Positions 2 through 57,568 of a stretch of DNA of 64,000 nt are shown piece by piece. The translations under genes and the position numbers were made by a program. The notes under the pieces were generated by a model, which saw nothing but the letters and a program-made list of their open reading frames with translations, made no database searches and had not been told where the DNA came from. Position 1 is the first letter of the stretch; the number at the start of each line of letters is the position of its first letter. The stretch is from positions 124,001-188,000 of the IMG/VR virus record IMGVR_UViG_3300028416_000004, one strand, 5' to 3'.

Positions 2-1210
2 CTTTATGTTGACATTTATATTACCACAAGTTAATTGTCTCATATTAAAAACTTGAGCTAACGACAACATATATTCGCCATTTATATCAATATTAGATGA
101 AGTGCAATTGTTTCTAATATAAAAAGAATAAGCGCAATCATAATAGTATCTACGTTTTACGTAAGATGAAAAATCCAAAAACTCGGAATCCATAATAGTA
201 TAGACACTACCATATCCAGCATTACCAGATAAGAAGTATTTGTGTTCCTCATCAGATATTAATGTGAATTTACAGTCATTAACGGTATTTCTGATTTCAA
301 TTAATTGACAACTATTAGACCTTAAACTTTTAGTTTCTGAAAAGAAGTTAAAATTATTACCACCATTACATGTGAAATACATCGATAAACCGTTACTTGT
401 ATCTGGTCCTAAACCAGTAGCTTCAAATTCTAAATAACCCAACACTGTACATGTTTCACCAGTTGTTCCGTTTGGTGAGAATAGACCAACACTTTGACCA
501 GTTGGTGCCTCATTAATCATATTAATTTTAACACCAGCACAAAAATAATACGTTATACCATCTTTCCATAAATTTAATTCAGTCTGCCAAACACCATCAT
601 ATTGATTACCAGTAGAATCACTATTATCAAAAACAATTGTTTGTGGTAACACATATATTAAATCACCATATGTTGAAGCTGTTTTAGCACCATAAAGTGT
701 TTTAAATGGTTTATCTAATCTACCTTTTTCACCAGTTGAGTCATCACCATTCTCATCAACAAAAAGTGTATTTGAAATAGTTACACCTGTAAAGAAACCA
801 TCAATGTTTATACTATTATTAGCATTATCTAATAATGTTAATACACCATTCTCTTTACTATAAGTGCTTCCTGTAATAAAAGTATCTGTTATACCTGTAA
901 CATCTATTGTAACAAAATCATTTCTAGAAATTGTTAATAAATCTAACTCTTGATTATAAGTAGCTCCAGTTACATATTTATCTTGAGATGTTGCTGCACT
1001 AATTATATGTTGAACATCAACATAATCTATATTCCCATTTGATGAATTTCTTGCTAATATTTGAAATAAAGAATTATCATTACTTGGAACATCTACAATA
1101 TTTAATGTATTAGCAGATAAGTTAGCTTGAATATAAGTATTTCCACTTACAGTACCACCACTTAATGGTAAAAATTTATCATCTATTTTAAAAAAATATT
1201 GTCCAGCCAC
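2..1210 (-). CDS. Tail fibre/spike protein with probable beta-helix domain (partial, runs off window start)
   Basis: Not in the ORF track. Hand translation from GTG at 1210 (MAGQYFFKIDDKFLPLSGGTVSGNT...) stays open to the window edge. It has the fibre-type FLPLSGGT motif and LFVDENGDDSTG...KPFKTL..GDLIYVLP, typical of the start of pectin-lyase-like beta-helix domains. Confidence 0.7.
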   Translation of the reverse strand, partial: MAGQYFFKIDDKFLPLSGGTVSGNTYIQANLSANTLNIVDVPSNDNSLFQILARNSSNGNIDYVDVQHIISAATSQDKYVTGATYNQELDLLTISRNDFVTIDVTGITDTFITGSTYSKENGVLTLLDNANNSINIDGFFTGVTISNTLFVDENGDDSTGEKGRLDKPFKTLYGAKTASTYGDLIYVLPQTIVFDNSDSTGNQYDGVWQTELNLWKDGITYYFCAGVKINMINEAPTGQSVGLFSPNGTTGETCTVLGYLEFEATGLGPDTSNGLSMYFTCNGGNNFNFFSETKSLRSNSCQLIEIRNTVNDCKFTLISDEEHKYFLSGNAGYGSVYTIMDSEFLDFSSYVKRRYYYDCAYSFYIRNNCTSSNIDINGEYMLSLAQVFNMRQLTCGNINVNIK

Positions 1211-1211
1211 T

Positions 1212-1571
1212 TTATATATTATTTATATCTTCTTCAATTTTAATACTTATACCTCCTTCTCTAGGTAAAGACATCTTTGTTCCATTTGCAAAAAACAATT
1301 CAAATTCACCAATAAAATTTCCAGAAATAGCAGTATCTCCTTCTACCCATTGATATTGTATTATACCAGAGTCATTAGAAATTACTTGAGCTACTTTAGA
1401 AGATATAACTAAAGCTCCACAATCATCTACCATAGAAAATTCAACTTTAGTTACAGCACTTAAATTCAATCTATTCCAACCTCCTAAACAACCTTTATCA
1501 TAAACGGTAGCTATCAAAGCTGGTGCTGTATCATTTCTTTTTATAATAAATGGTTTTTCTCCTCTTGCCAT
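1212..1571 (-). CDS. BppU-like baseplate upper/Ig-like virion protein
   Basis: IKRNDTAP...GIIQYQWVEGDT...GNFIGEFE pattern typical of BppU N-terminal domains; tail gene context. Confidence 0.6.
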   Translation of the reverse strand: MARGEKPFIIKRNDTAPALIATVYDKGCLGGWNRLNLSAVTKVEFSMVDDCGALVISSKVAQVISNDSGIIQYQWVEGDTAISGNFIGEFELFFANGTKMSLPREGGISIKIEEDINNI

Positions 1572-1575
1572 ACTT

Positions 1576-1938
1576 TTAATTATTAACTATTTCTAATCTT
1601 ACTTCTTGATTTTCAAGTCTTATGTCAATATTTTGACCAACTACAACAGGGCTTAATTTAAATCTTGTTATAAGTCTCTTTTCTGGACTATCTACTGTAT
1701 ATTTTAAAACCCAATTCATTTCATATATATCATCAATATTGTATAAACCTGGGGATAAATTTACATAATACCTTCCTAAAGAATCATTTATAACTTCAGG
1801 ACTCTCTATAACAATAGAATCTCCTTCTATTGTTACATAACCAGATATTTCTTCTACATTTATTAAATCATATGTTTCTCCACTTAAAGTGGTTATATTG
1901 ATACAATAAAAATCTCTATAAAGTCTTAAATAAGCCAT
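1576..1938 (-). CDS. Hypothetical virion protein
   Basis: ORF track gives 1576..1962; ATG at 1938 (MAYLRLYRDF) is the more likely start. GRYYVNL Ig-like strand; structural context. Confidence 0.5.
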   Translation of the reverse strand: MAYLRLYRDFYCINITTLSGETYDLINVEEISGYVTIEGDSIVIESPEVINDSLGRYYVNLSPGLYNIDDIYEMNWVLKYTVDSPEKRLITRFKLSPVVVGQNIDIRLENQEVRLEIVNN

Positions 1939-7373: not shown

Positions 7374-8603
7374 TTAACCTAAATAAATAGGAAGTGGACC
7401 ATAACCTAAAGTTTTGTTTACATACTCTTGCATTAATGCATTGTTTTCTAATAAAGATTTATAATTTAATCTATCTAATAAATCTCTTAACTCCTCTTTT
7501 AAAGTTTTCATATCTTCTTTACCATTAGATATTAAATCTGCATGATTCATTGTTAGAGAAGCATCTGGTATTGGTAATTCACCTGAAAATTTACCTCTAA
7601 CACCAATTCCTAACAATTCTTTCGCATTAGCTTGTGCATATTTTTTAACCCATGTTTTTGCTGGGTCATTTAATTCATTAAATCTTAAATTATATAAAAC
7701 AGCATCAGAAGGGCCAGAAACTAAACCATTACCTTGATTTTGTAAACCGTCTACTGAATTTGTACTACCTGTAAATCCTGGATTTGCAGTATTTCCACTA
7801 AAAGCATCATTACCACCAATTCCTATTTTATCATAATAATAATAAAACATAGTTCCTGGAGTACCAGCACCTCCACCAATACCCATATTGGAAGCACCAA
7901 GACCTGTAGTAGTGTTTATTCTAGGTATAGGATATAAAGAAATTACTTTAGTCCCATTTGCACCTCCTCTAACCCTGTATGAATATTCAGAACCTCTAAC
8001 TTTATTTCTTAATTCAGCAGCTTGAGCTGTTAAAATAGTGTCATATACTGGCATCACATGGTATAATGTGTGACCAGCAAAAGAAGCTCCAAATTCAGAA
8101 AAAGCTATATTTGAATTTGCAAAAGGGTCTAAACCAAATAAATTTATAAAGTTAGGAGTAAACCAAAGAACTTCATTTATTTCTTGACCTGCAGGAATTA
8201 TGTAATCTTGTGTACCAGCTGTTAGGGGAATATTTCCTAACTTCAACTCCCTATTACTGTTCATACCCCCAAGACCACTTACTTGTTCAGCATAAGCAGT
8301 TGAGAATGTTTTTTCAAAACCAAAATTTTGTGAAACAAATTTTAAAGTAAAATCTATATCACTAGGCAAACCTAACATTTGTGAAAGTCTATTTTCTAAA
8401 GCCCATTGATGTATATAAGAAGAATATTCTTCAATAGCTTCACATAAACATTCTTCTAATTGTTCATCTTCTAATTCAACACCCATAACAGGCTCACCCA
8501 ACTTTCTTCTAATTCTTCTATAAATTCTAGAAATTTGTTGGTCAGTCATTCCTTCTAAACAACCTTCAGAAATAATTTCACAATACCCAAAACCTTGACT
8601 CAT
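7374..8603 (-). CDS. Neck/head-tail adaptor (T4 gp13-like)
   Basis: RRKLGEPVMGVELEDEQL, WVKKYAQANAKELLG..RGKFSG, C-terminal PLPIYLG. Confidence 0.85.
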   Translation of the reverse strand: MSQGFGYCEIISEGCLEGMTDQQISRIYRRIRRKLGEPVMGVELEDEQLEECLCEAIEEYSSYIHQWALENRLSQMLGLPSDIDFTLKFVSQNFGFEKTFSTAYAEQVSGLGGMNSNRELKLGNIPLTAGTQDYIIPAGQEINEVLWFTPNFINLFGLDPFANSNIAFSEFGASFAGHTLYHVMPVYDTILTAQAAELRNKVRGSEYSYRVRGGANGTKVISLYPIPRINTTTGLGASNMGIGGGAGTPGTMFYYYYDKIGIGGNDAFSGNTANPGFTGSTNSVDGLQNQGNGLVSGPSDAVLYNLRFNELNDPAKTWVKKYAQANAKELLGIGVRGKFSGELPIPDASLTMNHADLISNGKEDMKTLKEELRDLLDRLNYKSLLENNALMQEYVNKTLGYGPLPIYLG

Positions 8604-9672: not shown

Positions 9673-9747
9673 GGCCCATTCGTCTAGTGGTTAGGACGCC
9701 AGGTTTTCATCCTGGAAACAGGAGTTCGATTCTCCTATGGGCTACCA
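9673..9747 (+). tRNA. tRNA-Glu(TTC)
   Basis: Cloverleaf GGCCCAT/ATGGGCT, anticodon arm CCAGG-TTTTCAT-CCTGG, GTTCGA T-loop, encoded CCA. Confidence 0.95.
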
Positions 9748-10349: not shown

Positions 10350-11954
10350 ATGGAAAATAAAAATTTTATAGAAAGTATAATTGAAAATGATAATTTAAAA
10401 GAAATAGTAACTAGATTCCCCCCAGAAAATTCTGGTTACCTTCATTTGGGACATGCTAAATCTATATTTTTAAATTTTGGGTTAGCAGAAAAGTATAAGG
10501 GAAAATGTAATTTAAGAATTGATGATACAAATCCTTCTAATGAATCTGACATTTATACAAAATCTATAATTGAAAACATTAAATGGTTAGGTTTAAATCC
10601 AAACAAGATTACTTATGCTTCAGATTATTTTGAAGAAATTTATAATTTTGCTATAGAATTAATAAAAAAAGGTAAAGCTTATGTATGTTCTTTAGATTCA
10701 AAAGAGATAAAAGAATACATGGGTACAACTGACAAGCCAGGAAAACCTAGTCCAAATAGAAATTTAACTGTAGAAGAAAATTTGCTTTTATTTGATTCTA
10801 TGAAAAAAGGTCAAATTAATGATGGAGCAATGACTTTAAGAGCTAAAATAGATATGTCTTCTCCAAATGTACATATGAGAGACCCGATTATATACAGAAT
10901 TAAAATGGAAAACCATCAAAAAACTGGAGATAAATGGTGTATATATCCTATGTATGATTTTGCTCATTGTTTGTCCGATGCTATTGAATGTATTACTCAT
11001 TCTATTTGTACTTTAGAATTTGAACCGCATAGACCTCTTTATAATTGGATTTTAAATGAGTTAATTGAAAGAGAAATTAAACCAAAACAAATAGAATTTT
11101 CTAGACTTAATTTATCTCATACTGTTATGAGTAAAAGGAAAATTAAAAAACTAGTAGAAGAAAATGTTGTAGATGGTTGGGATGACCCTAGACTTCCTAC
11201 TTTATCAAGTTTAAGAAGAAAAGGTGTACCAGCAAAAGCAATTAAAATCTTTTGTGATAAGATAGGAATTTCTAGAAGAGAGAGTTTAGTCGATTATTCT
11301 TTATTTGATTCTTGTATCAAAGAAGTATTAAATAAAGAAGCTAATAGAAGAATGGTTGTTTTTGACCCAATAAAGGTAACAATAACAAATTGGGATAAAG
11401 AAGATGAAATGTTACCAGCTAAATTAAATCCTGAATCTGAAGAAGAAAAATATAGATATGTAAATTTTGGTAAAAACTTATATATTGAAAGAGAAGATTT
11501 TATGGAAAATGCTCCAAAAAAATTCTTTAGATTGACTCAAGGTAGAGAAGTTAGGTTTAAATATGGTTATTATGTTACTTGTAATGATATTATTAAAGAT
11601 AGTGAAGGTAAAATTGTAGAACTTCTTTGCACTTATGACCCAAACACTAAAGGAGGTTGGTCAGATGATGGAAGAAAAGTGAAAGGTACTATACATTGGG
11701 TTAATGCAGATAAAAATATACCAATTAAAGTTAATTTATATGATAGACTTTTTAATGTTGAAGAGCCTGGTGAAAACTTTTTAGATGAATTAAATGAAAA
11801 ATCTAAAGTTGAAACAGATGCTTTTATGGAAATAGATGGAAATGATGAAAATGAAGGGGTTGGTATTCAATTTGAAAGAAATGGATATTATGTTAGAGAA
11901 AATTTAGATATCTGGAATAGGATTACACCACTTAAAGATTCATTTAAAATTTAA
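10350..11954 (+). CDS. glnS: Glutamine--tRNA ligase
   Basis: TRFPPE..GYLHLGHAKSI (HIGH), YPMYDFAH, THSICTLEF, VMSKRK, GWDDPRLPT, KGTIHWV, QFERNGY. Confidence 0.93.
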   Translation: MENKNFIESIIENDNLKEIVTRFPPENSGYLHLGHAKSIFLNFGLAEKYKGKCNLRIDDTNPSNESDIYTKSIIENIKWLGLNPNKITYASDYFEEIYNFAIELIKKGKAYVCSLDSKEIKEYMGTTDKPGKPSPNRNLTVEENLLLFDSMKKGQINDGAMTLRAKIDMSSPNVHMRDPIIYRIKMENHQKTGDKWCIYPMYDFAHCLSDAIECITHSICTLEFEPHRPLYNWILNELIEREIKPKQIEFSRLNLSHTVMSKRKIKKLVEENVVDGWDDPRLPTLSSLRRKGVPAKAIKIFCDKIGISRRESLVDYSLFDSCIKEVLNKEANRRMVVFDPIKVTITNWDKEDEMLPAKLNPESEEEKYRYVNFGKNLYIEREDFMENAPKKFFRLTQGREVRFKYGYYVTCNDIIKDSEGKIVELLCTYDPNTKGGWSDDGRKVKGTIHWVNADKNIPIKVNLYDRLFNVEEPGENFLDELNEKSKVETDAFMEIDGNDENEGVGIQFERNGYYVRENLDIWNRITPLKDSFKI

Positions 11955-13303: not shown

Positions 13304-14587
13304 TTAGTATTTTATTTTAAAGTTAGGTCTATATGATTGGTCTCTTGTTCCATATCCAGATGGATATGAATTATCTTGATAACTATACCATGAATCATAA
13401 TAAGTGTTATCAAAATGACATTCAGCCCATCCAAAACCAGACCCCCAATTAGCATCTCTATTTTCCCAAATTATCAATAAACTATCATTTCCGTTATATT
13501 CAAAGTTATTATCGAAATCTATAGATTGATAACCAGAATTGTTTATAGTCCAGTTAAAATTTGATTTAACAGTTGTTAAGTTAGAAACGTCATTAATATT
13601 TGTTAAATCCACTTTAACATTACTTCCAAATTCTAAATCGCTAATATGAGCTAATTTTATAGTTTGATTATTAAAAGTGTAACCTGGTGTATATCCACCA
13701 ACTTCTATTTCTAAACCATGTAATATTTTACTTCCAGAGCCTATTTCTGAAGCTCTAATTATAAACATAGAGTGTGAATAATCATAATATCCATATGCAG
13801 GATATCTTTCTTCATTACTTGTCCCAACTGATGATGTCCAAATTAAATTTTGTATTACTGGTGAATTTGTACCTCCCGATGTACTTCCCGATGTACTTCC
13901 TGATGTACTTCCCGATGTACTTCCTGATGTACTTCCTGATGTATCTCCCGATGTACTTCCAGAAGTTTCTCCAGAATAAGTAATTCCACTATTAGAACTT
14001 AAAATTGAAATTGAAGAAGAACCTATCTCTACAACTTCATAATTGCCATCGACACCTTTTAAAGTAAAAAGTTTCCCATCTGCAATATTTAACATTAACT
14101 CACCAGGTAGTAAGTCGCTTACTGAAGGTGTTAAACCGCTTTGTTCTGAAGATTTAACTAAAAATTTAAAAAATCTATTACTTCCACTATAAGAAGTTTC
14201 ACCACTTATAGTACCACCATTAACAACATCTGTTTCTTTAATTACTCTAACTCCATCCAAAGAAGAGTTTGAACTATTACACAAAACAATATCATTCAAT
14301 TCTGTTGCAAAACCTAAATTTGTATATCCACTACTAGAATTATATTCACTTATGTTTAACTGATTGTTAGTTAATACATTTAATGAAGCTATTCTAAATG
14401 TAACATCATTACCTAAAGCATCACCATCTTGTATAGTTAAACCAGCACCTATACCTTTATTAGATGTATTTCCACTTAGTTGATAATTTAATACTACATT
14501 ATTATCTTCAATATTTAATTCACCTAACCTATTAAGGTAATAAGGCATTTTATCTATGTCTTGAATTTGTGAAAGAAATAATTTCAT
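13304..14587 (-). CDS. Fibre/decoration-like virion protein with (SGST)n linker
   Basis: LLPGELMLNIADGKLF fibre-type motif, S/G/T tandem linker, beta-rich C-terminal domain. Confidence 0.6.
   Translation of the reverse strand: MKLFLSQIQDIDKMPYYLNRLGELNIEDNNVVLNYQLSGNTSNKGIGAGLTIQDGDALGNDVTFRIASLNVLTNNQLNISEYNSSSGYTNLGFATELNDIVLCNSSNSSLDGVRVIKETDVVNGGTISGETSYSGSNRFFKFLVKSSEQSGLTPSVSDLLPGELMLNIADGKLFTLKGVDGNYEVVEIGSSSISILSSNSGITYSGETSGSTSGDTSGSTSGSTSGSTSGSTSGSTSGGTNSPVIQNLIWTSSVGTSNEERYPAYGYYDYSHSMFIIRASEIGSGSKILHGLEIEVGGYTPGYTFNNQTIKLAHISDLEFGSNVKVDLTNINDVSNLTTVKSNFNWTINNSGYQSIDFDNNFEYNGNDSLLIIWENRDANWGSGFGWAECHFDNTYYDSWYSYQDNSYPSGYGTRDQSYRPNFKIKY
13875..13960 (-). repeat. 12-bp tandem repeat encoding (TSGS)n
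   Basis: About 7 copies of GATGTACTTCC[CT] on the + strand; in frame. Confidence 0.9.
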
Positions 14588-29676: not shown

Positions 29677-29680
29677 TGAT

Positions 29681-31349: not shown

Positions 31350-31350
31350 A

Positions 31351-31941: not shown

Positions 31942-31943
31942 TT

Positions 31944-33391: not shown

Positions 33392-33405
33392 ATAATAATA
33401 ATAAT

Positions 33406-34029: not shown

Positions 34030-34038
34030 TATAAAACA

Positions 34039-39465: not shown

Positions 39466-40674
39466 ATGGAAACAGTTTCTCAACAAATTTCAGAAGAAGA
39501 AATGTTAAAACAAAGAGAAAAAGCAATTTCAAGTCTTATTTCTAAAATAGAAAAAGAAGAAAATACAGTATATATATACTGTCCTGCTATGAACACTCCT
39601 AGTGGAGGTATCTCTGTTTTATTCGAACACGCAAAAATATTAAAAGATGCTGGAAAAAGTGTGGCAATCATTTATGAACCACAACAAAATAATAAAGCAT
39701 CATTAGAAGCTACTCAAAAAGCTAGATTAAAAGGTGCTAAAGACCCAGTAATTATTTTTGATAAATTTAACCCAACTTGGTTAGGTGATTTAAAAGAAGA
39801 AATTGATGTTAGATGTTTAGCTGAAGGAGTTCTTACTTATACTGATGGAACGACTGAAACAGTAGAATCATTAAAAATGAATCCAGAAGACATCTTAATT
39901 ATACCTGAAGGATTTCCTAATATTATGGAAAACACTTCTCAATTACCTTGTAGAAGAGTTGTTATGGCTCAAAGTTGGTATTATGTTTTATCTGGTATGA
40001 AGGTTGGTCAAAAATGGCAACACTTTGGAATTAAAGATGTAATTTCTGTTTCAGATGGTATTACAGAATATTTAAATACTATTATGCCAGGTTTAAATAT
40101 TAAAAATTATAAACAAGGTATTGATAGAAAATTGTTTAATGTCCCAGAAAAAATTTCTGATAAAGCTCCAATGATTTCCTATATGCCTGGTAGAGGGCCA
40201 GAGTCTCAAATGAAAACTAATACTGTTATTAGAACATTTTATGAATTTTATCCACATTATAGATGGATTCGTTTCGCTCCTCTTCAAGGTTTAACTAAAG
40301 AACAATTTGCACAACAGTTAAAAAATTCTGCTATCGCATTATATACTGATGAAGTTGCTGGATTTGGTACATTACCTTTAGAAGCTATGGCTAGCGGTAC
40401 TCACGTTGTTGGTTGGACTCCTTTTGGAAGTAAAGAATATGTGAATGAAAAAAATGGATTTTGGGCTGTTAACGGAGATGTTTTCCAATTGGCTGAATTG
40501 ATTGGTATGGCTTTGGATAGATATTTTTCTGGAGTTTTAGATTCAGAAGAAATTCAAAAAGAATACGAAAGAACAATTTCAGAGTATACAAGAGAAAAAG
40601 AAGTAGAATCTGTATTAAATATTTATAACACTATTAAAAATGAAAGAATTGAAGAATTTAGAAACCTTAAATAA
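39466..40674 (+). CDS. Glycosyltransferase (GT-B, GT4-like)
   Basis: PSGG...LFEHA..L, DILIIPE, GID..LF, GFGTLPLEAMASG..VVG. Confidence 0.85.
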   Translation: METVSQQISEEEMLKQREKAISSLISKIEKEENTVYIYCPAMNTPSGGISVLFEHAKILKDAGKSVAIIYEPQQNNKASLEATQKARLKGAKDPVIIFDKFNPTWLGDLKEEIDVRCLAEGVLTYTDGTTETVESLKMNPEDILIIPEGFPNIMENTSQLPCRRVVMAQSWYYVLSGMKVGQKWQHFGIKDVISVSDGITEYLNTIMPGLNIKNYKQGIDRKLFNVPEKISDKAPMISYMPGRGPESQMKTNTVIRTFYEFYPHYRWIRFAPLQGLTKEQFAQQLKNSAIALYTDEVAGFGTLPLEAMASGTHVVGWTPFGSKEYVNEKNGFWAVNGDVFQLAELIGMALDRYFSGVLDSEEIQKEYERTISEYTREKEVESVLNIYNTIKNERIEEFRNLK

Positions 40675-41590
40675 TAAAAATTTATTAGTTGTATTACCAA
40701 TTAATAAAATTGAAGAAGAAACTTTAAGTGAATCTTTATATAATTTAGCAGAACAAACAAATCCTACGGATGTTTTGATTTTAGTTTCTGAAAATTTAGA
40801 AAAAGATACTTTAGAAAAAATTTCTGAAATAGCTAACAAACCTTATAAAAGAGCTTTTGAAACAGATGATAAAGGAAATCCTTTAACAAAAACTTTAACT
40901 TCAGAAAAAACATTGAACTTTGCTATTCAGACAACTACATCAACTAGTTTTAACTCTGTTTTTAACGATGCTTTTAATATTGCTAACGAAAATGGATATA
41001 AGTGGTTTTCTGTAATTGATAAAGATGATGTTGTTGAAGAAAGTTGGGTCTATAATTTTGATAGATTCTCTACTGAAAAAGAAGACGTATCTGTATTTTT
41101 CCCAATTGTAAGACAAGTTTCAGCTGGAAATATGACTGGACATTTAAATGAAGCTACTTGGCTTGAAGGTAAAGTTGAAGTTTCTGGGCAAGCTGACTTA
41201 CAATTATTAATGTCTTGGAATTGCTTATCACCAACAGGTTGTATGTTGAAAGTTGAAGATATTAAAGAATACAGTGAAGAAAGAGAAGGTAAATATTATC
41301 CTTTTAAGGAAAATATGAGTATCGCTTCTTCATATGAATTTTTCTTAAGAATGATTTATGAAGATTTAAAAACTTATACTATTCCAAGATATGGTTATCA
41401 AATGAGAATGGATGTTAATAGCTCAACTTTTGATAGATTCTCTTCAAAAATCCCTTCAAATATAACTACAATATCTAAGGAAAATGGAGGTTTGACTGCT
41501 AAAGAGATTGGCTTTTGGATGGAACAAGCTAAAAGTGAATACTTTATGTCTGAAGATAGAGAAATAGAATACGAAGAAACAACCGCCTAA
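40640..41590 (+). CDS. GT-A-fold glycosyltransferase-like protein
   Basis: VVLPI, SL..Q, WFSVIDKDD, YEFFLR...TIPRYGY. Confidence 0.6.
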   Translation: MKELKNLETLNNKNLLVVLPINKIEEETLSESLYNLAEQTNPTDVLILVSENLEKDTLEKISEIANKPYKRAFETDDKGNPLTKTLTSEKTLNFAIQTTTSTSFNSVFNDAFNIANENGYKWFSVIDKDDVVEESWVYNFDRFSTEKEDVSVFFPIVRQVSAGNMTGHLNEATWLEGKVEVSGQADLQLLMSWNCLSPTGCMLKVEDIKEYSEEREGKYYPFKENMSIASSYEFFLRMIYEDLKTYTIPRYGYQMRMDVNSSTFDRFSSKIPSNITTISKENGGLTAKEIGFWMEQAKSEYFMSEDREIEYEETTA

Positions 41591-49628: not shown

Positions 49629-51035
49629 ATGGGAAGACTTAGAATTTATCCTGACAAAAATAACACAATAGCTTCTGGTTATTTCGAAAACTTTAACTCT
49701 GCCTATAATCCAGGTACTATATTGTGGTATGGGGGGTCTGGATTAAGAAATAGTATATCTAAATTTTTGATTCACTTTGATTTAGAAGAATTAAAAAATA
49801 AATTAAATTCTAAGGAGATAAATTCTGATTACATCTCTTCTTATAGACTTAAGATGACAAATGTAGTTCCAGACGGAAAATTGTTAGAAAGTGATTTTGA
49901 ATTTGCTAGATTGGACAAAAAAATAGCTTCTTCTTTTGATTTAATCGCTTTTCCTGTCAATAAAGAATGGGATGCTGGTAGAGGTTATGATTTAATGGGT
50001 CAAGAATATATAAAAACTACAAAAGGCGATACAAATTTAACTGGCTATTCAAATTGGAATCAAGCAACATCTATTACTTCTTGGGATGAGCCAGGAATTT
50101 TTATAAATCCTACAGCTTCAACAACTAATTATTCTATTCAACATTTTGATGTTGGAGACGAAGATTTAGATTTAGATATAACTAATATCGTAAAAGATTG
50201 GCTTAGTGGAGGTTCTGAAAATTATGGTTTAGCAATTTCTTATACAAGAGATTATGAATTAATTTCAGGATACACTAGGTATATGTCTAGATTTTATACT
50301 AAGCACACTAATACAGCTTTTAAACCTTATATGGAAATTGTGTATGACAATCAAATAATAAGAGATGATAGATTAAGAGTAGCAAATAATAGAACTTCTA
50401 GGTTATTCTTAAATTTATTTAGTGGAAATACATCGGCTAATTATTTTTCTGCTGGAACTGTTTCTATAAAAAACTCTGCTAATCAAGATGTTATAACTGG
50501 ATTAACGCCAAACCAATTAACAAAAGGTGTGTATTATGTAGATGTTTTAATGACAGGTGCAACAAAAAATCAAATTTATAAAGATGTGTGGAATGATATA
50601 ACATTTTCCCCAGGCATTGACAAACAATCTTTTGAACAAAAATTTCATATTTTAGGTAATTATTATACTAATTTTCCAAAAGAAATTAATCAATATGTAG
50701 TTGAGTTATATGGAATATCTAATAATCAAATTCTTAAAAAAGGAGAATTGATAAGAATATATGCAGAAACTAGAGTTGAATATAGTACAAAAACTCCTAA
50801 TGAATATTATGGTTTAGAATATAGATTAATCCATAATGAAATTACAGAAGTTATACCTTGGTCTTCTTTCAATTCAATAGTAATAGATGGTTGCACTAAA
50901 GAATTTATTGATTTAGACACTTCTTGGCTTTTATCTAATCAAAATTATAAGATTGAATTAAGAGTAAATGAACTAGGAACTAAAAGAGTATTGGATGAAA
51001 CGGTTTATTTTAAGATTTTCAATGAAAGAAATTAA
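49629..51035 (+). CDS. Virion structural protein
   Basis: KNNTI, SKFLIHFDL, W..G.GYD, DL.LDIT..V..W, FYTKHTNT.FKPY.E; baseplate-adjacent. Confidence 0.6.
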   Translation: MGRLRIYPDKNNTIASGYFENFNSAYNPGTILWYGGSGLRNSISKFLIHFDLEELKNKLNSKEINSDYISSYRLKMTNVVPDGKLLESDFEFARLDKKIASSFDLIAFPVNKEWDAGRGYDLMGQEYIKTTKGDTNLTGYSNWNQATSITSWDEPGIFINPTASTTNYSIQHFDVGDEDLDLDITNIVKDWLSGGSENYGLAISYTRDYELISGYTRYMSRFYTKHTNTAFKPYMEIVYDNQIIRDDRLRVANNRTSRLFLNLFSGNTSANYFSAGTVSIKNSANQDVITGLTPNQLTKGVYYVDVLMTGATKNQIYKDVWNDITFSPGIDKQSFEQKFHILGNYYTNFPKEINQYVVELYGISNNQILKKGELIRIYAETRVEYSTKTPNEYYGLEYRLIHNEITEVIPWSSFNSIVIDGCTKEFIDLDTSWLLSNQNYKIELRVNELGTKRVLDETVYFKIFNERN

Positions 51036-51089: not shown

Positions 51090-54053
51090 ATGGCAGATAT
51101 TATAAAAAAAATAAAAACCAATAAAGATGTAAATGTAATAACTTACTTTACGACAGTTGATGCGAGTTCAAAAGAAATTTTTGAAAAACTCAAAAATATT
51201 TCCAGTTTACCAACTATAAATAGACAACTTAGAATTTGGGATACTATACAACAACAAGGAAAAGAAGCTTATGCAATAAAAGGAGCAAATAATAAAGTTG
51301 TTGAATTGTTAGAAATGGTAGATGGTTCTTATTGTAAAAGAATACCTTTAACTAATGAATTTAAATTTTTATCTGAAGATGAAGAAAAGAATGTAGTTAA
51401 AGGTAAAGTTTTTTATGCAAAACAAGATTATGTAAGACCATTAAAGAATGAAACTGTTGAAGAATTTATAGAACAAGCAATAGCTTACTCTGGAAATTCA
51501 GCATATTCAAATGTTTTTAATACAATTCAAAAAAAAACAGATTACTATGCTGACATAACTTTAAAAAGGAGTATAGATACACTCGATACTTTAAATGTCA
51601 AAAATAATCTTTTATCTGAAGTACCAACTCAAGAGTCAGACACTGGTGTTGTATGTGGAACTTTAGTAGCTAGACAAAAAGTTTTAGATGAAAATGGAGA
51701 AAGAGCTTTAATTCCTTTGGCAAATGTTCCAATAGTTATTTTTAATCCTTCAGAAGAATTTCCTACATATACTTCTCAGGATGAAAATGGCAATAGAATA
51801 ACTTTGAATGTCATACAAAATTCAGAACCAGAAGATTATTCAGATTTAAACTCTTATGTTTTAGATGTAGGTGTAGATAAGGCAAGAGAAGCTTTAGGGA
51901 GTAATGATGTTGGAGAGGAGTTTGATGGATTGAAACCTTTGTTAAAATCTGTTGAAAGTTTAAATTTACCTGAACATTATAAATATTCAACTATTACAAA
52001 TGAAAAAGGAGAATTTGTAATTCATGATGTACCTACTGGAAATCAAGTTTTATTATTTGAAGTAGATTTATTAAAACAAGGGATGAATAAAAGTGAAGTC
52101 GCCTTAAATTTCTTCCCATACACTAATGAAGAATTACCTAACATAGATAATGTACCTCATTTTTATTATAGGCAAATTCCAATCTCTGTAGTTTCTTCTT
52201 GGGGCGAATTTCAAACTGGATTTACTGAAGTGAATATAACTTCTAATTTAGATATGAGAAAATGGTCTACTTTTTATGTATCTCCCATTTCTGTTGAAGA
52301 TAATAATTTAGAAGAACTTTTTGCTTTAGGTAATTTTAGTAGATTAAATATTTTAGCTAAAGATATGACTAAAGAAGGATATCCTTTAACTACAGAAATA
52401 GTAGAAGTGGATGATATTTTTTCTAGAGTTGAAAATCAAAGATTAGAGTGGTTTAATGAAAATAAATTTACTAAGTCACAGATTAATTTTAGTAAAAATA
52501 ATTTTCAAACTTTTAAACTACCTGCTAATCTTTATGACCCAAATGGAATATCATCTAAAGATGGTGGAAGAACTAAATTAAATTCTAAAAAAGGTGTTTG
52601 GTTATGTTCTTATCAAATGAAAATGTATTACGAAGGAAATCCAGATGTTTATCGAACAACTGGATTTTTAAGAGATAAATTAGAAGAAAATGCTGTTCAT
52701 TCAAGTCATTTTGATGCTAATAGAGGTGTAGACTCTAATCCTTCTTCTGCTACTGGCAACGGATACAATACTTCTATCAACACTTTTCCATATGAAAGAA
52801 CTTGGACAATAAATTACCCAGAACCTTATAAAATACCTTCACTACCTATAGAATATAATGAAAAAGACTTCAATAATCAAGTTGAGCCTAGATATTTAGA
52901 TGGTGATTTAGCTGGGTTTTATTATGGTCAAGAAGAATCAACAGGGTATGGACTTATGACTCCCTTAGAAGGAGGTGATGCTATATATAATAAATTTTCA
53001 CAGACGATTACTAAAAGTAGAATATATAAATATGAAACAGATGTTTCTTGGCATGAAGAATATTCAAATGGATTTAGAAAATCACAACACTCTAATCTTT
53101 TTCAAGGTAAACATTTTACTGTAAAAAGTGGAGAAAAGTATCAAAGAATAGAATGTGGATTTGCTTATTGGTTAAAACCAGAAGGTTGGGGTAGAATTAA
53201 TAATCAAGGTTGGGGTGATATTATGTTAAATTCAGATATTAATTCAAATTATTCATCTTCAGACAATAAACTTATACCTCAATCTTATATAGGTGCAAAT
53301 TATAGACAGAGTGAAAATTTATTATTAAAAATGGATAGCTCAATTTCTCCTTCATGGTTAAGACAAGGTGCTATTGATTTTTATAGAATTGTAGATGATT
53401 CTCCTCAATTTTTAGAAGAAAAAATACCATCACCAATTAAAAAGTATGGCAAAGTTGTAATTGAAAATATCTACACCAATAGAGAAAAGGCTATCTCTAG
53501 GCTTGAATTACGAATAAGTAATAAAAAAAACTATAGAATGAGAATTTCACAAAATTCTGTTATTGAAATAACAAATAATGGTGCCATAAAATCTGAAATA
53601 ACAGTTAATGGTGATAAGAGACAAGTTGAACCAAAAAAATCTATCTCTTTTAATGTTGCATCTTATACTGAAATTACATTTACTTCAAATTTAGATTATG
53701 ATATTCAAAAAAATTCTTATGATACTTGTAATTATACATTTAAGTTTAAAAATAGTGAAATTAAGAAAGTAGACACTATAATTTATGATTATTATAACTT
53801 TACCTTAACAGCTGGTGAACAAACTCAAATACCAACTAGATATTTAGTTACGACAGTATATAGTGCTGAAGGTAATGTAAAAATCAAGAAAAAAGGAGTT
53901 AAGAAGTGTAAAAAAACATTCAATCAAGCAGGCACATATCAGATTAATGGTTTGATTTTTGAAAAAACTAAATCTTCATCAGCATTAAGCTTCACTTCAT
54001 CACGAGTAGGTCATGATTGTGCTGATGGTGGTATTAAAATTTTGAGAGTTTAA
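51090..54053 (+). CDS. Large virion/baseplate protein
   Basis: 987 aa; GVVCG, YKYSTITNEKGEFVIHDVPTG (Ig/carboxypeptidase-regulatory-like). Confidence 0.55.
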   Translation: MADIIKKIKTNKDVNVITYFTTVDASSKEIFEKLKNISSLPTINRQLRIWDTIQQQGKEAYAIKGANNKVVELLEMVDGSYCKRIPLTNEFKFLSEDEEKNVVKGKVFYAKQDYVRPLKNETVEEFIEQAIAYSGNSAYSNVFNTIQKKTDYYADITLKRSIDTLDTLNVKNNLLSEVPTQESDTGVVCGTLVARQKVLDENGERALIPLANVPIVIFNPSEEFPTYTSQDENGNRITLNVIQNSEPEDYSDLNSYVLDVGVDKAREALGSNDVGEEFDGLKPLLKSVESLNLPEHYKYSTITNEKGEFVIHDVPTGNQVLLFEVDLLKQGMNKSEVALNFFPYTNEELPNIDNVPHFYYRQIPISVVSSWGEFQTGFTEVNITSNLDMRKWSTFYVSPISVEDNNLEELFALGNFSRLNILAKDMTKEGYPLTTEIVEVDDIFSRVENQRLEWFNENKFTKSQINFSKNNFQTFKLPANLYDPNGISSKDGGRTKLNSKKGVWLCSYQMKMYYEGNPDVYRTTGFLRDKLEENAVHSSHFDANRGVDSNPSSATGNGYNTSINTFPYERTWTINYPEPYKIPSLPIEYNEKDFNNQVEPRYLDGDLAGFYYGQEESTGYGLMTPLEGGDAIYNKFSQTITKSRIYKYETDVSWHEEYSNGFRKSQHSNLFQGKHFTVKSGEKYQRIECGFAYWLKPEGWGRINNQGWGDIMLNSDINSNYSSSDNKLIPQSYIGANYRQSENLLLKMDSSISPSWLRQGAIDFYRIVDDSPQFLEEKIPSPIKKYGKVVIENIYTNREKAISRLELRISNKKNYRMRISQNSVIEITNNGAIKSEITVNGDKRQVEPKKSISFNVASYTEITFTSNLDYDIQKNSYDTCNYTFKFKNSEIKKVDTIIYDYYNFTLTAGEQTQIPTRYLVTTVYSAEGNVKIKKKGVKKCKKTFNQAGTYQINGLIFEKTKSSSALSFTSSRVGHDCADGGIKILRV

Positions 54054-54068
54054 TTTTAAAAAAAACTA

Positions 54069-56396
54069 ATGAAAGATAAAATAAAAATATTATTAGGTGA
54101 AAAAGATGTTTTTCCTCAAGTAAATAAAGATGTTTATATAAATTTAGAAATTTATAATTCACCTAATGAAATTAAAAAAGAGTTAGTTAATAATGACTTT
54201 AATGTAAGAGAACAATTTAACAAAGAAAGAAGAGAATCTTTGAGATTTTGTATATATGGAACCTTAAATTCAATCTTTTCTGATACCAACAATTTATCGA
54301 TAGAAATAAAAACTAATCATGAAGATTTGTTGTTTAGCCCAAGAATAGAACCTAATGCTAAATCTTCTGTTACACATAAAGTGTTATCAGCACCTTTATC
54401 AAAAAATAATAATTTATCTAAAAATATATTTAAAAAAAATAAAAGTTGTTTTAATTTTTTGTTTGAAATTAGCCCTGATATAAATAATTATGGAGAAACT
54501 AAAGTTTTAGAAGTTAAAATTATTGATGAGGAAAAAAATATTTTTGCCAATTTTGAGATACCATTTTTATTTTTCGATTCTGAAGGTAATTTTATTGATT
54601 TTGGTACAGAAACAGTTGATATAGATATAGACGGTAATGAACAAGTTGTAGAAAATGATTTTCCTTTTTTTTATGGAACTCATTGGATAAAACAAGAATT
54701 TAGTCTATCTAAACCCCTCAAAATATCCCTAGTTAAATCTGAATTTGATAATTTAAATAATTTAACTGTAAACGAAAGAACGGGTGAAGTAAAGTTTTAT
54801 GCTAAATTAGAAACGCCTAGTTTATATGGGGTTGAAGAGGCTGAAATTTATATAGAAAGAGATGAGACTTTAAAAGACCCAAATGAAGATTTTGTTTTTG
54901 AAAATCAAATTTTAAAATGGGAAAAAGGAGAACAATTTAAAGAAGTTAATCTACAAGTTTTAGATGATTTATTTACGGAGGAAGATGAAAGAATTATTTT
55001 TGGTATTAAAAATCTAAAATATTCAGAAAAAGATATTAATTCTAATTTTGAATTAATCATAAAAAATGATGATTTACCATCTCCTATAGGGTTTGAAAGT
55101 AAGCAATTTGAAATTACTTCTGGAGATAAATTGAATATATCATTAGAAGCAGACACTCCAATAAAAGGTATTAATCAAACTATAGATTTAATTTTAGATG
55201 ATGTTAATAGTACAATAATAATAGGAGAGGACATAGAGAATACTGGTACTATTGAAGACCCAGAATTTAGAAAGACCATACTTTTAAAAGAAGGTTTAGA
55301 TTTATTTGAAATAGAAATAGATATAAAAGAATATTTTAATTATGGATTAGATAAAAAAGCTATTTTTAAATTAGAAAATCCTACTCAAAATATTAAAGTA
55401 AAAGATAATTTAAAACAACTTAATTTAACTGTAAAAGATAAATCAGTAAAAAGATATACTACATACAAAATAGATAATGACCCTTTAAGAGGTCAAGGTA
55501 TATTTAGATTGTCATACCCTAGTCCTAAATTAGTGGGGGCTCCAATATCTTTTGCTAATACGAATCTGTATTCTCAATATAATGTAACTAACAACTTTAC
55601 TTATAAAATTAATATTATAAACGAAGGAGAAATTGTTTTATATGATAATAAATTAATTAATCCTGGGGAGGTTGTTACAAGTATAAGTTCAAGTGATGGA
55701 TTTCAAAACTTTGAGTTTACATTACCTTCTAATTATTCTTTTGATAAACAAAATGTTTTTTATGAAAAATCAAAATATAAGTTTGTAATAACAGATATAG
55801 AAGATTCTTCTAAAATACAAGTTATAAAAAATGATTACATAACTTTCGCAGATGTTAATATAGATTCTCAAGCATTAGATTCTTCACTTGATTTTTCTGG
55901 TAAAACTTATTATTTAACTTCAGAAATTTTAAAAATAAAAACTAGATTAGATTTAAATGGTGATTTAAAAAGTGAAAAGGCAATTTATGATATAATCAAT
56001 AACGCTAAGATTAACACAAGTGATAATTTAACTGTAATTAAGCAAAAATTAAGAGATGCAGGTTATTATAAAAAAAATACGTTTACATTTTTGAATAATA
56101 AATTTGATGAAAATAAAATAACTTCCACAGCAAATAGTATATTGAATTTTATTAGTAAATATCCAACCTTTGAAATACCTAACTTTTTTACTCCTTCAGA
56201 TGAAATTAGTAGTTTCTCTATAGATTGCAAAATAAATGGTTTATTAATATTAAGTAAATTATTTAGCAAAACATCAGCAGTTACTAAAGTTAATAATATT
56301 AAATTTGAAGAAAATCCTATAAAATATACTTATTTTAAAGAAGTAGATGGTAGTAATTATACATTAATGCCAGTAGAACCATTAAATAATTATTAG
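54069..56396 (+). CDS. Virion protein with Calx-beta-like repeats
   Basis: FNKER.ES..F.IYG; LKWEKGEQFKEVNLQVLDD...EEDE and LKEG...FEIEI Calx-beta-like segments. Confidence 0.55.
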   Translation: MKDKIKILLGEKDVFPQVNKDVYINLEIYNSPNEIKKELVNNDFNVREQFNKERRESLRFCIYGTLNSIFSDTNNLSIEIKTNHEDLLFSPRIEPNAKSSVTHKVLSAPLSKNNNLSKNIFKKNKSCFNFLFEISPDINNYGETKVLEVKIIDEEKNIFANFEIPFLFFDSEGNFIDFGTETVDIDIDGNEQVVENDFPFFYGTHWIKQEFSLSKPLKISLVKSEFDNLNNLTVNERTGEVKFYAKLETPSLYGVEEAEIYIERDETLKDPNEDFVFENQILKWEKGEQFKEVNLQVLDDLFTEEDERIIFGIKNLKYSEKDINSNFELIIKNDDLPSPIGFESKQFEITSGDKLNISLEADTPIKGINQTIDLILDDVNSTIIIGEDIENTGTIEDPEFRKTILLKEGLDLFEIEIDIKEYFNYGLDKKAIFKLENPTQNIKVKDNLKQLNLTVKDKSVKRYTTYKIDNDPLRGQGIFRLSYPSPKLVGAPISFANTNLYSQYNVTNNFTYKINIINEGEIVLYDNKLINPGEVVTSISSSDGFQNFEFTLPSNYSFDKQNVFYEKSKYKFVITDIEDSSKIQVIKNDYITFADVNIDSQALDSSLDFSGKTYYLTSEILKIKTRLDLNGDLKSEKAIYDIINNAKINTSDNLTVIKQKLRDAGYYKKNTFTFLNNKFDENKITSTANSILNFISKYPTFEIPNFFTPSDEISSFSIDCKINGLLILSKLFSKTSAVTKVNNIKFEENPIKYTYFKEVDGSNYTLMPVEPLNNY

Positions 56397-56414
56397 TGAG
56401 ATATATTTATATAT

Positions 56415-56735
56415 ATGAAAGAGACTTATCAATATAAAATAAGATTAAATGTCACTCCTTTTGGGGGAATAAAAACTAGTACTGGTTTAATTTCAGATGC
56501 TTATGATAAAGACTTTTATATAAATATCCCAGTATACAAGACACATAATTTAGAGGGATATGTAAATGTTGACATTGACCCGTCAAGAGCTACTATGGAA
56601 AGACAATTTATAAATCCTTTTTTTATAGAATTAGGTTTTTTTGAAAATGTAGAATCAGTATTGAGTTCAAATACAAGTTCCGACAATTCCATACAAATTA
56701 AAGCTCAAAATTACGGAATAGATATTAATAAATAA
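56415..56735 (+). CDS. Hypothetical (likely virion) protein
   Basis: 106 aa; late-type motif just before the ATG. Confidence 0.55.
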   Translation: MKETYQYKIRLNVTPFGGIKTSTGLISDAYDKDFYINIPVYKTHNLEGYVNVDIDPSRATMERQFINPFFIELGFFENVESVLSSNTSSDNSIQIKAQNYGIDINK

Positions 56736-56737
56736 AA

Positions 56738-57568
56738 ATGTTAAAGTATAAAATAGTAATAAAACCAGTAAATCTATCAGATGCTACAATAGAAAATAAC
56801 TTTAGCGTTACAAATGGTTATTTAGTTTATGATAATTCTAAAGTTGAACAAGGAGTTTTGGTTGATGAGTTTAATGTTCAACAATTTTTAGAAGACCCCA
56901 ACAATTCTGTTGTTGTCGAAAAATTCAAAAAATACCTTAGAGAATATACTAATGAATTAGAATTTAATGAAATATTTTATAAACCAAAAAAAGTAGCTCC
57001 AATACTTAATGATTTTTATAATGAAGAAATTAGATTTAACTCTGAAGCAAATCCAGCATTAATAACTGATGCAATAAAAGATACAGAGGTTATATATTAT
57101 CAAAATAATAATTACGACTTTTTAAGTAATCAAAGAATGTCTTTTGAAAATAAATCTTTATTATTTGAGTCTTTAAGTGCTAATACAGAATATAAAGATT
57201 ACTATATTGATTTTAAAGTTGATTTAAATAAAAGCCTTATAGGCAATAATGATTATTCAAATTATATCAAAGATTATAAGGAAGATGATATTGTCTATAA
57301 AAATTCTTTTGTAAATTTAAATGATAAAGTTAATCCATTTGAGTTTTGGACAAATGAAAAAAATACAAAAAAATGGATTACAAGTCCAGAAAATACTGAA
57401 GAAATAAGAGTTCAAGATTTTGAAAATATAGCTTTAAAATTCGAACAACAAGCAGAAGCTGTAAAAGACAAGAATAGCATCGAATTTGCAACTCTAAATA
57501 ACAAAGCAATACAAGCTAGAAAAGTTGCTGATTTAGAAAGAGCTAAATTGAATAGAAAAACAAATTAA
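56738..57568 (+). CDS. Hypothetical (likely virion) protein
   Basis: 276 aa in the structural operon; MLKYKI start resembles YQYKI of the previous gene. Confidence 0.55.
   Translation: MLKYKIVIKPVNLSDATIENNFSVTNGYLVYDNSKVEQGVLVDEFNVQQFLEDPNNSVVVEKFKKYLREYTNELEFNEIFYKPKKVAPILNDFYNEEIRFNSEANPALITDAIKDTEVIYYQNNNYDFLSNQRMSFENKSLLFESLSANTEYKDYYIDFKVDLNKSLIGNNDYSNYIKDYKEDDIVYKNSFVNLNDKVNPFEFWTNEKNTKKWITSPENTEEIRVQDFENIALKFEQQAEAVKDKNSIEFATLNNKAIQARKVADLERAKLNRKTN

Follow-up and report, generated by a model that had tools for sequence, protein, structure and literature searches.

An uncultured jumbo T4-like phage and its relatives have repeatedly evolved a short motif, [S/T]-[G/A]-x-T, in the outer loops of many unrelated virion proteins, and also carry soluble glycosyltransferases, a combination which fits a virion sugar coat that no experiment has yet shown. 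The analysis concerned a window of 64,000 nucleotides (positions 124,001 to 188,000 of IMG/VR record IMGVR_UViG_3300028416_000004), taken from a genome of at least 232 kb, the rest of which was not examined. A preliminary description of the window had proposed that [ST]-[GA]-x-[ST] is confined to exposed virion surfaces and is the acceptor site of a phage-encoded O-glycosylation pathway comprising about 10 glycosyltransferases. The motif pattern it described is confirmed by our counts, and in a sharper form than was stated; the glycosylation it inferred from this pattern is only partly supported.

Enrichment, directionality and distribution of the motif

Across the window proteins, [ST][GA]x[ST] occurs 82 times against 35.3 +/- 5.9 in whole-protein shuffles, or 73 against 34.2 upon removal of one tandem array, while permuted control motifs run at 0.94-1.43x. 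Every hand count of the preliminary description was reproduced (Table 1), including the absence of sites from the tube, the putative scaffold, the protease and a 534-aa protein, and the single site in the A1 homologue. All of the excess lies in the T-ending form: S[GA]xT is enriched 3.6-4.5x and T[GA]xT 2.8x, whereas the S-ending forms run at 1.1-1.4x. In virion-module proteins [ST][GA]xT occurs 45 times against 10.2 expected (4.4x; Poisson 1e-15), or 11.8 +/- 3.3 after shuffling in 8-residue blocks, while the reversed motif occurs 11 times; when only PHROG-confirmed virion proteins are considered, the count is 13 against 4.7 (P 0.0012). All other proteins have 4 against 5.2. The term "confined" nevertheless overstates the case, since S-ending hits occur in the P-loops of enzymes and one S/T-rich LamG-like virion protein has no site. 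Moreover, within this window neither the capsid (3 vs 1.6) nor the sheath (8 vs 3.8, p about 0.04-0.06) is significant alone, although their homologues in relatives are.

An unbiased scan of 8000 gapped tripeptides of the form "ab.c" ranked SG.T 2nd, TG.T 3rd and SA.T 6th. Only the full three-position combination is enriched, [ST]G.T being at 3.7x against 1.14x for [^ST]G.T, 0.95x for [ST]G.[^ST] and 1.1x for [ST]..T. D or N before G.T is not enriched, which argues against a generic Asx/ST-turn. Shared domains were rejected as the cause, as all-against-all BLASTP of the window proteins found no similarity among the motif-rich proteins. A DNA-level motif was likewise rejected, as the underlying 12-mers are diverse and only the Ser codon choice is skewed: Ser at the first position uses AGT, which is one step from Thr ACT, in 18 of 30 cases against 25% overall (p 6e-5). 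The possibility that the N-terminal SGGT-x-SG of the fibre-like protein is a widespread tail-fibre repeat was not borne out either, this element being absent from T4, Flavobacterium phage immuto, Mel-JY01 and RM378, and searches of Pfam and of cultured phages having given no hit.

Table 1. Features of the window, with the number of [ST][GA]x[ST] sites and the supporting evidence.
Coordinates (strand)	Feature	Motif sites	Evidence and remarks
2..1210 (-)	Fibre-like protein; GTG start at 1210, C-terminus cut by the window edge	11, of which 9 in the first 180 residues	11 vs 1.7 expected, p<=0.0005; no Pfam, PHROG or cultured-phage homologue
2701..5034 (-)	Tail sheath	8 (5 T-ending), all in residues 99-449, the outer variable domains; none in 481-776	phrog_23 E 6e-79; only residues 5-95 and 481-776 align to T4 gp18; relatives' sheaths have 12-15 sites vs about 4.4 expected
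7374..8603 (-)	Neck / head-tail adaptor-like protein	4	phrog_211; 4 vs 1.1 expected
10350..11954	534-aa protein, called GlnRS in the preliminary description	0	GlnRS identity not confirmed by any family search here
13304..14587 (-)	S/T/G-rich protein of unknown role	14, of which about 9 from an (SGST)n array	Array encoded by a 12-nt tandem repeat at 13868-13960; no family hit
16633..18192 (-)	Major capsid protein (gp23-like)	3, at residues 150, 163 and 195	phrog_138 E 4e-70; sites in the region not alignable to T4 gp23 (PDB alignment); in 71 homologues the motif columns cluster at query residues 150-260; capsids of relatives mean 3.3 vs 1.1 for the T-ending form
22771..24003 (-)	GT4 glycosyltransferase (GT4a), just downstream of the head genes (protease, scaffold, capsid) on the same strand, apparently co-transcribed with 24007..24351		Pfam Glycos_transf_1 E 4e-10; 54-58% identical homologues in 7 relatives; promoter-like motif upstream of the operon
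28032..35078 (+)	Glycan island, in order: GT2, unknown, unknown, GT2, unknown, GT25, sulfotransferase, GT10, FkbM methyltransferase, APS kinase, cytidylyltransferase		Pfam; no membrane segment in any product (hydropathy scan); no late-promoter-like motif
39466..41590 (+)	GT4 (GT4b, 39466..40674) and GT-A/GT2-like enzyme (40640..41590), next to a sigma-like gene and the baseplate genes		Pfam; family profile matches GT-A enzymes in PDB, E 1e-6; synteny conserved across the clade; no homologue in 50,697 cultured phage records
43012..45603 (+)	863-aa protein with a CarboxypepD_reg-like domain, in the baseplate gene region	6	14-19 sites in close relatives
49629..51035 (+)	468-aa all-beta protein of predicted tandem Ig/FN3-like sandwiches, next to the gp25- and gp6-like baseplate genes	8	8 vs 1.1 expected, p<=0.0005; AlphaFold model and Foldseek; family used for the gain/loss analysis
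51090..56396 (+)	Two large baseplate-region proteins (987 and 775 aa)	4 and 3	Weak excess; no family assignment
61441..62661 (-)	DUF2827 protein, downstream of two LamG-like virion proteins		Pfam E 4e-94; called glycosyltransferase-type in the preliminary description, which no test here showed
62980..63666	S/T-rich LamG-like virion protein	0	0 vs 1.6 expected

Lineage specificity and repeated gain

The signal is specific to the lineage. Related loci, about 160 in number, show the motif at 2.29x and 2.17x (reverse motif 1.16x and 1.29x), whereas 80 unrelated environmental phage loci show 1.35x (reverse 1.46x), T4 1.06x, RM378 1.18x and immuto 1.49x (reverse 1.58x), with Mann-Whitney p values of 5e-9 and 1e-8. 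A generic property of T4-like or beta-rich virions was rejected on these grounds. In 12 near-colinear homologues of the 49629 protein (42-90% identical), one sub-lineage has 7-8 sites where others have, at the same positions, DNNTK, D-x-W-A, NNPT, DGDK or SSEV, and neighbouring proteins gained sites in the same genomes (5 vs 0; 3 vs 0). The motif thus replaces unrelated residues at many loops, so that it was gained repeatedly and the fold does not need it.

Two outcomes named beforehand as refuting the glycosylation hypothesis, a lack of enrichment over shuffled controls and burial of the sites, were examined as far as the data allowed, and neither test refuted the hypothesis. The enrichment survives composition and local-composition shuffles and is directional, and the sites lie in the variable outer parts of sheath and capsid and, in the AlphaFold model of the 49629 protein, in loops, turn ends or low-confidence coil.

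Glycan-related genes

Pfam searches confirmed seven clear glycosyltransferase-type genes and one weak one, rather than about 10, together with a sulfotransferase, an APS kinase, an FkbM methyltransferase and a cytidylyltransferase. All are soluble, and they are partly embedded in late structural operons, GT4a and the GT2-like gene lying in operons that carry the promoter-like motif shared with structural genes. This motif is [AC]TATTTAT; its reverse complement TATAAATA, first considered as the late promoter, is enriched (48 vs 24) but is not what sits upstream of structural genes. The glycan island appears specific to this strain: tracing it in relatives through the sulfotransferase returned only two identical copies, and the island was found only in identical copies of this phage.

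The link from motif to sugar is still pure inference. Another condition named in advance was the co-occurrence of motif enrichment with glycosyltransferase genes in related phages, which was examined within loci of about 20 kb, the only ones accessible, and not across whole genomes. The three glycosyltransferases tracked in these loci (22771, 39466 and 40640) are present in relatives with strong, weak or no motif excess, as illustrated by the related loci L150 (0 vs 3.2), L163 (0.97x) and L142 (4.2x), and therefore do not co-vary with motif density. An association scan of every gene cluster in the 20-kb loci against motif count gave nothing significant, and motif counts in different proteins of one genome correlate only weakly (rho 0.24). 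No enzyme in the window resembles a known protein O-glycosyltransferase.

Interpretation

We consider [S/T]-[G/A]-x-T, usually preceded by L, F or Y, to be a short linear motif selected for its own sake in outward-facing loops of most exposed virion proteins of this phage and its clade of uncultured T4-like jumbo phages. The most likely mechanism is that the motif is the acceptor site for a post-translational modification made in the cytoplasm before or during assembly, most plausibly O-glycosylation by the phage's own soluble glycosyltransferases. Other enzymes in the window could extend, methylate or sulfate the glycan, so that the finished virion would carry a sugar coat. The analysis establishes the enrichment of the motif, its directionality and its restriction, as an excess, to virion proteins, its repeated independent gain, its placement in loops and outer domains, and the presence and solubility of the glycan enzymes; that any residue is modified, which residue carries the modification, which enzyme starts the chain and what the sugar is are matters of inference, the mass of virion proteins not having been measured. 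O-glycosylation is the best single explanation but is unproven, and we hold it tentatively. Besides the lack of co-variation, the glycan island lacks the late-promoter-like motif, a Gly-containing four-residue motif is expected in turns anyway, some sites are conserved in all sheath homologues as a structural element would be, and one S/T-rich virion protein is devoid of sites. A second structure prediction, searches of large protein databases and genome and metagenome scans were not used, as none was judged able to decide between the hypotheses. There are, on the other hand, two precedents: glycans occur on mycobacteriophage capsid and tail tube subunits (as cited in PMC12619734), and the cultured phage Mel-JY01, whose capsid protein is among the closest in the cultured-phage collection, encodes beside its structural genes a TibC-like domain (E 1e-69 to PDB 4rap) fused to a GT4 domain, TibC being a protein O-heptosyltransferase that acts on folded protein in the cytoplasm (PMC4358343).

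Almost as possible is that the motif is a selected surface-loop element with no covalent modification, such as a loop-stabilising or hydration motif, or a weak adhesive patch for polysaccharide or mucus multiplied for avidity, in which case the glycosyltransferases would act on something else, such as host envelope glycans or phage DNA. The presence of Gly, the position of sites at strand-turn junctions, the conservation of several sites in all seven sheath homologues, and the alternation of S/T with D/N while Gly is kept at some aligned sites of the 49629 family (site 4), as in an Asx/ST-turn, are suggestive of this, as are the lack of co-variation and the missing promoter-like motif of the island. 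However, the fold exists without the motif in close relatives, where at most sites the replaced residues are unrelated and lack Gly; D/N at the first position and half-motifs are not enriched overall; T4, RM378 and the 80 unrelated loci, which are equally rich in beta structure, lack the directional signal; the phage's own non-virion proteins show none; and the motif-rich proteins are unrelated in sequence.

Less likely, the motif may be the acceptor for a different modification, such as phosphorylation or acylation, or for a host cytoplasmic Ser/Thr transferase, differences in motif density between relatives then reflecting different hosts. This would agree with the variation in density between close relatives sharing the same conserved glycosyltransferases, with the failure to link any phage enzyme to the motif, and with the hydroxyl requirement at two positions, which fits any Ser/Thr-directed enzyme. 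However, no kinase or acyltransferase was seen in the window, and the general O-glycosylation of Bacteroidota is periplasmic and uses another sequon, which is not enriched here. Finally, a chance or compositional artefact, to which the choice of the motif by eye, the tandem repeat and the non-significant capsid might have pointed, was rejected, as z is about 10 even with 8-residue block shuffles and the array removed, the reversed motif sits at expectation, the motif forms are among the top of 8000 patterns, and the signal is replicated in the related loci.

Comparison with known glycosylation systems

As in mycobacteriophage virion O-glycosylation (Freeman et al. 2023, as summarised in PMC12619734), glycosyltransferase genes lie with the structural genes and the proposed targets are exposed virion subunits modified in the cytoplasm. 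In mycobacteriophages, however, the glycans sit on the C-terminal ends of the capsid and tail tube subunits, while here the tube has no site, the last 40 residues of capsid and tube are only 10% and 17% S/T, and the candidate sites are internal loops that are spread over many proteins and follow a linear motif.

Self-encoded glycosylation of capsids or fibrils in chloroviruses and giant viruses has been reviewed (PMC5408694, PMC9614988). Those systems also combine soluble virus-encoded glycosyltransferases with sugar-modifying enzymes and acceptor sites that differ from the host's sequon, but belong to eukaryotic viruses, and the chlorovirus capsid glycans are N-linked, whereas here the virus is a tailed phage, the candidate motif is Ser/Thr-based and sulfation genes are present. 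The gene set of the window fits this type and the motif differs from the host-type sequon, but with glycan attachment unproven the assignment is left undecided.

BAHT enzymes (TibC/AAH) place many sugars on Ser residues at a patterned set of surface positions on folded beta-rich autotransporter adhesins in the cytoplasm (PMC4358343), and 333 viral contigs carry TibC homologues. However, no GT9 or TibC hit was obtained among the window proteins scanned with Pfam, which included all the glycosyltransferase candidates, and DUF2827 as a TibC relative was rejected (E 0.99 against the TibC-like domain). Loci carrying TibC-like genes are not enriched in the motif, and TibC has no reported linear sequon.

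The general O-glycosylation of Bacteroidota follows the same logic of a short sequon, D-[ST]-[AILVMT], found across many unrelated surface proteins, but this sequon is not enriched in the window proteome (59 vs 53.7) and the system works in the periplasm, so that cytoplasmically assembled virions cannot reach it. Serine-rich-repeat adhesin glycosylation by GtfA/GtfB shares with the window an S/T/G-rich tandem array and GT4-family enzymes. However, Pfam finds only the Glycos_transf_1 C-terminal region in 22771 and 39466, with no DUF1975/GtfA-type domain and no GtfB-like partner, the only paralogous glycosyltransferase pair among the window's ORFs being 28032/29971, and most motif sites are isolated loops rather than repeats.

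With respect to T4-type DNA glucosylation, neither the T4 alpha- or beta-glucosyltransferase families nor hydroxymethyl-pyrimidine synthesis genes were found by Pfam in the window, an observation that does not settle the matter for the genome as a whole. An envelope polysaccharide or O-antigen modification island would be expected to encode an initiating phosphoglycosyl transferase, a flippase and a polymerase. No glycan-gene product has a membrane segment, and the window has no flippase- or polymerase-like membrane protein, its only ORFs with several membrane segments being a PrsW protease and a 118-aa protein, although host components could still be used.

Biological implications

Virion glycosylation in phages is documented for mycobacteriophages, but we found no description of a linear sequon for it in the papers searched. 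A more far-reaching reading, which is not excluded but which we regard as unlikely rather than likely, is that a whole clade of uncultured T4-like jumbo phages, probably infecting Bacteroidota, coats its virions with a self-made glycan, which may be methylated and sulfated, attached at a true linear O-glycosylation sequon written dozens of times into the exposed loops of capsid, sheath, neck, baseplate and fibre proteins. Site density would then rise and fall between close relatives much as glycan shields do in animal viruses.

If the motif is a sequon, glycosylated phage proteins could be predicted from sequence alone, a function would be given to the conserved but unexplained glycosyltransferases of large aquatic phages, of which four core groups of unknown role are noted in a similar lineage (PMC12619734), and a phage counterpart of the evolving glycan shield would be shown. 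Even if no sugar is attached, the result stands: a four-residue motif gained independently at many loops of unrelated virion proteins, and not enriched in the phage's other proteins, is an unexplained signature of selection.

Genomic context and lineage

The window is 64 kb of about 26% G+C DNA from a T4-like myovirus. PHROG and Pfam searches identified a tube, sheath, neck adaptor, major capsid protein, prohead protease, gp6- and gp25-like baseplate wedge proteins, a T5 A1-like protein and PhoH. It matches IMG/VR contig IMGVR_UViG_3300024359_000008, and a 232.5-kb contig carries an identical copy of one of its genes, so this is a jumbo phage. The closest capsid protein hits among cultured phages are a Flavobacterium phage (34% identity over 97% of the query) and Microcystis phage Mel-JY01 (46% over 65%), and the lineage is therefore uncultured. 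A comparable lineage of large aquatic T4-like phages, with predicted Bacteroidota hosts and four core glycosyltransferase groups of unknown role, was described in 2025 (PMC12619734); whether this phage belongs to it was not examined here. One relative, IMGVR_UViG_3300020576_006344, has a 71% identical capsid protein and a homologue (E 2e-147) of the glycosyltransferase GT4a, but a G+C content of 52.6% against 26-36% in the rest of the clade, and shows no motif excess in the 12 kb available. The features with coordinates are collected in the table below.

The DNA of the HNH homing endonuclease gene next to the capsid gene is about 65% identical to homing endonuclease genes of Bacillus phages AR9 and PBS1 and of Pseudomonas jumbo phages, and the gene is present in some relatives and absent in others. 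The tRNA-Gln gene lies about 450 nt upstream of a 534-aa protein termed GlnRS in the preliminary description, which matches phrog_12136, a family for which no function is named.

Features of the window discussed in the text
Position	Strand	Feature	Support
9673-9900		tRNA-Glu, tRNA-Asp and tRNA-Gln genes in a row	
10350-11954		534-aa protein	phrog_12136
15028-16503	-	491-aa HNH homing endonuclease	
22771		GT4 (GT4a)	Pfam
28032		GT2	Pfam
29971		GT2	Pfam
31351		GT25	Pfam
31944-32543		Sulfotransferase	
32543		GT10	Pfam
34039-34614		APS kinase	E 5e-69
39466		GT4 (GT4b)	Pfam
40640		GT2-like gene	Weak GT2 hit; family profile matches GT-A enzymes in PDB
49629..51035		49629 protein, used for the gain and loss comparison	
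59245-61421		PrsW-family intramembrane protease, DOT1-like methyltransferase and a 281-aa fragment resembling the N-terminal part of alanyl-tRNA synthetase	
61441-62661	-	DUF2827	Pfam
62980-63998	-	Two concanavalin/LamG-like proteins	One matches phrog_8510, 'virion structural protein'

Enrichment of the motif in virion proteins

The preliminary description had counted by hand a [ST][GA]x[ST] motif in outward-facing structural proteins, and all of its counts were reproduced. Comparison with shuffled controls, the yardstick by which that description had proposed its motif be judged, gave 82 occurrences against 35.3 +/- 5.9 with whole-protein shuffles and against an expectation of 39.4 with 30-residue block shuffles. 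After removal of an (SGST)n array, which is a 12-nt tandem repeat, the count is 73 against 34.2, while six permutations of the same residue classes run at 0.94-1.43x. The excess lies entirely in the T-ending form, S[GA]xT being enriched 3.6-4.5x and T[GA]xT 2.8x, whereas the S-ending forms are at 1.1-1.4x. When the proteome was split into virion-module proteins, defined by family hits and synteny, and everything else, the former had 45 sites against 10.2 expected and the latter 4 against 5.2. The virion excess survives 8-residue block shuffles (11.8 +/- 3.3, z about 10), the reversed motif occurs 11 times, and the use of only PHROG-confirmed virion proteins gives 13 against 4.7 (P 0.0012). To guard against choosing the motif after the fact, all 8000 'ab.c' patterns were scanned; SG.T, TG.T and SA.T rank 2nd, 3rd and 6th. 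Only the full three-position combination is enriched, half-motifs being at expectation, and D or N does not substitute at the first position.

The signal is not generic. T4 (94 kb, including all structural genes) gives 1.06x and Rhodothermus phage RM378 1.18x. Flavobacterium phage immuto gives 1.49x, but its reversed motif gives 1.58x, which is compositional clustering rather than this motif. Eighty loci from unrelated environmental phages give 1.35x forward and 1.46x reversed, while 158 loci related through the capsid protein or the 49629 protein give 2.29x and 2.17x forward, and 1.16x and 1.29x reversed (Mann-Whitney p 5e-9 and 1e-8). Across 75 related genomes, the 49629 family averages 3.9 T-ending sites against 0.68 expected and the capsid protein 3.3 against 1.1, and sheaths of close relatives carry 12-15 sites against about 4.4 expected.

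Location of the sites

In the sheath, the sites lie between the two segments that align to T4 gp18, which correspond to the exposed domains, and in the capsid protein they lie in the stretch that does not align to gp23, where they also cluster in 71 homologues. Solvent exposure in the assembled lattices was not computed. An AlphaFold model of the 49629 protein (pLDDT 70.5) is all-beta, and Foldseek matched it only to tandem Ig/FN3/macroglobulin-type sandwiches. In that model the eight sites lie in low-confidence coil or in confident loops and strand ends; over the whole family, 62% of motif residues map to coil against 46% of the model overall.

Evidence for selection on the motif itself

Twelve homologues of the 49629 protein are almost colinear and 42-90% identical; one sub-lineage has 7-8 sites, others have 3 and two have none. 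Where the motif-rich proteins have SGAT, TGWT, TGAT, SGNT or TGET, relatives have DNNTK, D-x-W-A, NNPT, DGDK or SSEV. In the same genomes the neighbouring 650-aa and 520-aa proteins have 5 and 3 sites, against 0 and 0 in the low-motif genomes. The fold therefore does not need the motif, and the motif was gained many times. The motif-rich proteins of the window share no detectable similarity. Ser at the first position is encoded by AGT, one step from Thr ACT, in 18 of 30 cases against 25% of all Ser codons (p 6e-5), which fits repeated interchange with Thr ACT/ACA.

Glycan genes and a promoter-like motif

In addition to the glycosyltransferase-type genes listed in the table, the window encodes a sulfotransferase, an APS kinase, an FkbM methyltransferase and a cytidylyltransferase. 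None of these products has a membrane segment, and the window has no flippase- or polymerase-like membrane protein. The APS kinase and sulfotransferase genes lie in one operon with the glycosyltransferases, which implies a sulfated product. The sulfotransferase was recovered only from two other contigs, both carrying identical copies and representing identical copies of this phage. GT4a has full-length homologues at about 25% identity in about 150-kb E. coli myoviruses and in Campylobacter phages, and at 34.5% in a 735-kb metagenomic phage (records of Phapecoctavirus and related phages, and LR756501), most of which are annotated as hypothetical.

A promoter-like motif, [AC]TATTTAT, lies 12-59 nt upstream of 25 of 72 genes on the coding strand (for example 2522, 5034, 5817, 14587, 19658, 20375, 41590-side 40619 and 49504), against 2 on the opposite strand. 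It is the reverse complement of the T4 late box TATAAATA. It marks nearly all structural operons, so it is probably the late promoter of the lineage, as well as the GT2-like gene and the operon containing GT4a, but it does not mark the 28-35 kb glycan island.

TibC-like enzymes in other phages

Beside its structural genes, Mel-JY01 (PP395634.1, 4750-8427 of the locus examined) encodes a 1226-aa protein annotated as 'methyltransferase FkbM' that has a GT4 domain and a C-terminal domain clearly homologous to the protein O-heptosyltransferase TibC (E 1.4e-69 to PDB 4rap). By eye in the alignment, the Asp, Thr, Lys, Arg, Trp and Cys residues described as catalytic, sugar-binding or iron-binding (PMC4358343) appear conserved. 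TibC glycosylates serines on a folded beta-helical adhesin in the cytoplasm. Homologues are carried by 333 IMG/VR viral contigs, often as fusions of 600-1300 aa, and protein O-glycosyltransferases are therefore available to large aquatic phages. The loci with TibC-like genes do not show the motif, however, and the window has no TibC homologue. In the window, the two concanavalin/LamG-like proteins lie directly upstream of the DUF2827 gene, and homologues of the first appear in 25 of the 80 loci that carry TibC-like genes, which hints at a recurring pairing of a lectin-like virion protein with a transferase.

Interpretation

The observation made in the preliminary description is confirmed and sharpened to [S/T]-[G/A]-x-T. 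Its interpretation, that the motif is the acceptor site of a phage-encoded O-glycosylation pathway coating the virion, is only partly supported: whereas the enrichment of the motif, its repeated gain and the presence of the glycan genes are results of our analysis, nothing shows that a sugar is attached, and this step is inferred. Co-occurrence of the motif with glycosyltransferase genes in related phages had been proposed in advance as a test. GT4b, the GT2-like gene and a sigma-like gene proved to be present in nearly every relative whose locus covers that region, and fragments matching GT4a appear at the edge of many loci, in relatives with high and low motif density alike. No gene in the 20-kb loci tracks motif density, and the correlation of site counts between proteins of one genome is weak (rho 0.24). 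No enzyme in the window resembles a known protein O-glycosyltransferase, and some sheath sites are conserved in all homologues, as a structural element would be.

A cytoplasmic O-glycosylation coat is the best single explanation, although we hold it only tentatively. A surface motif that is not modified is possible and only somewhat less likely. Alternatively, another modification or a host enzyme may be involved, which we consider unlikely; chance and composition are excluded. The motif behaves like a sequon in five ways: it is short and directional, it needs all three positions, it is shared by unrelated proteins whose only common property is a place in the virion, it is absent from the phage's enzymes, and it is gained and lost between close relatives.
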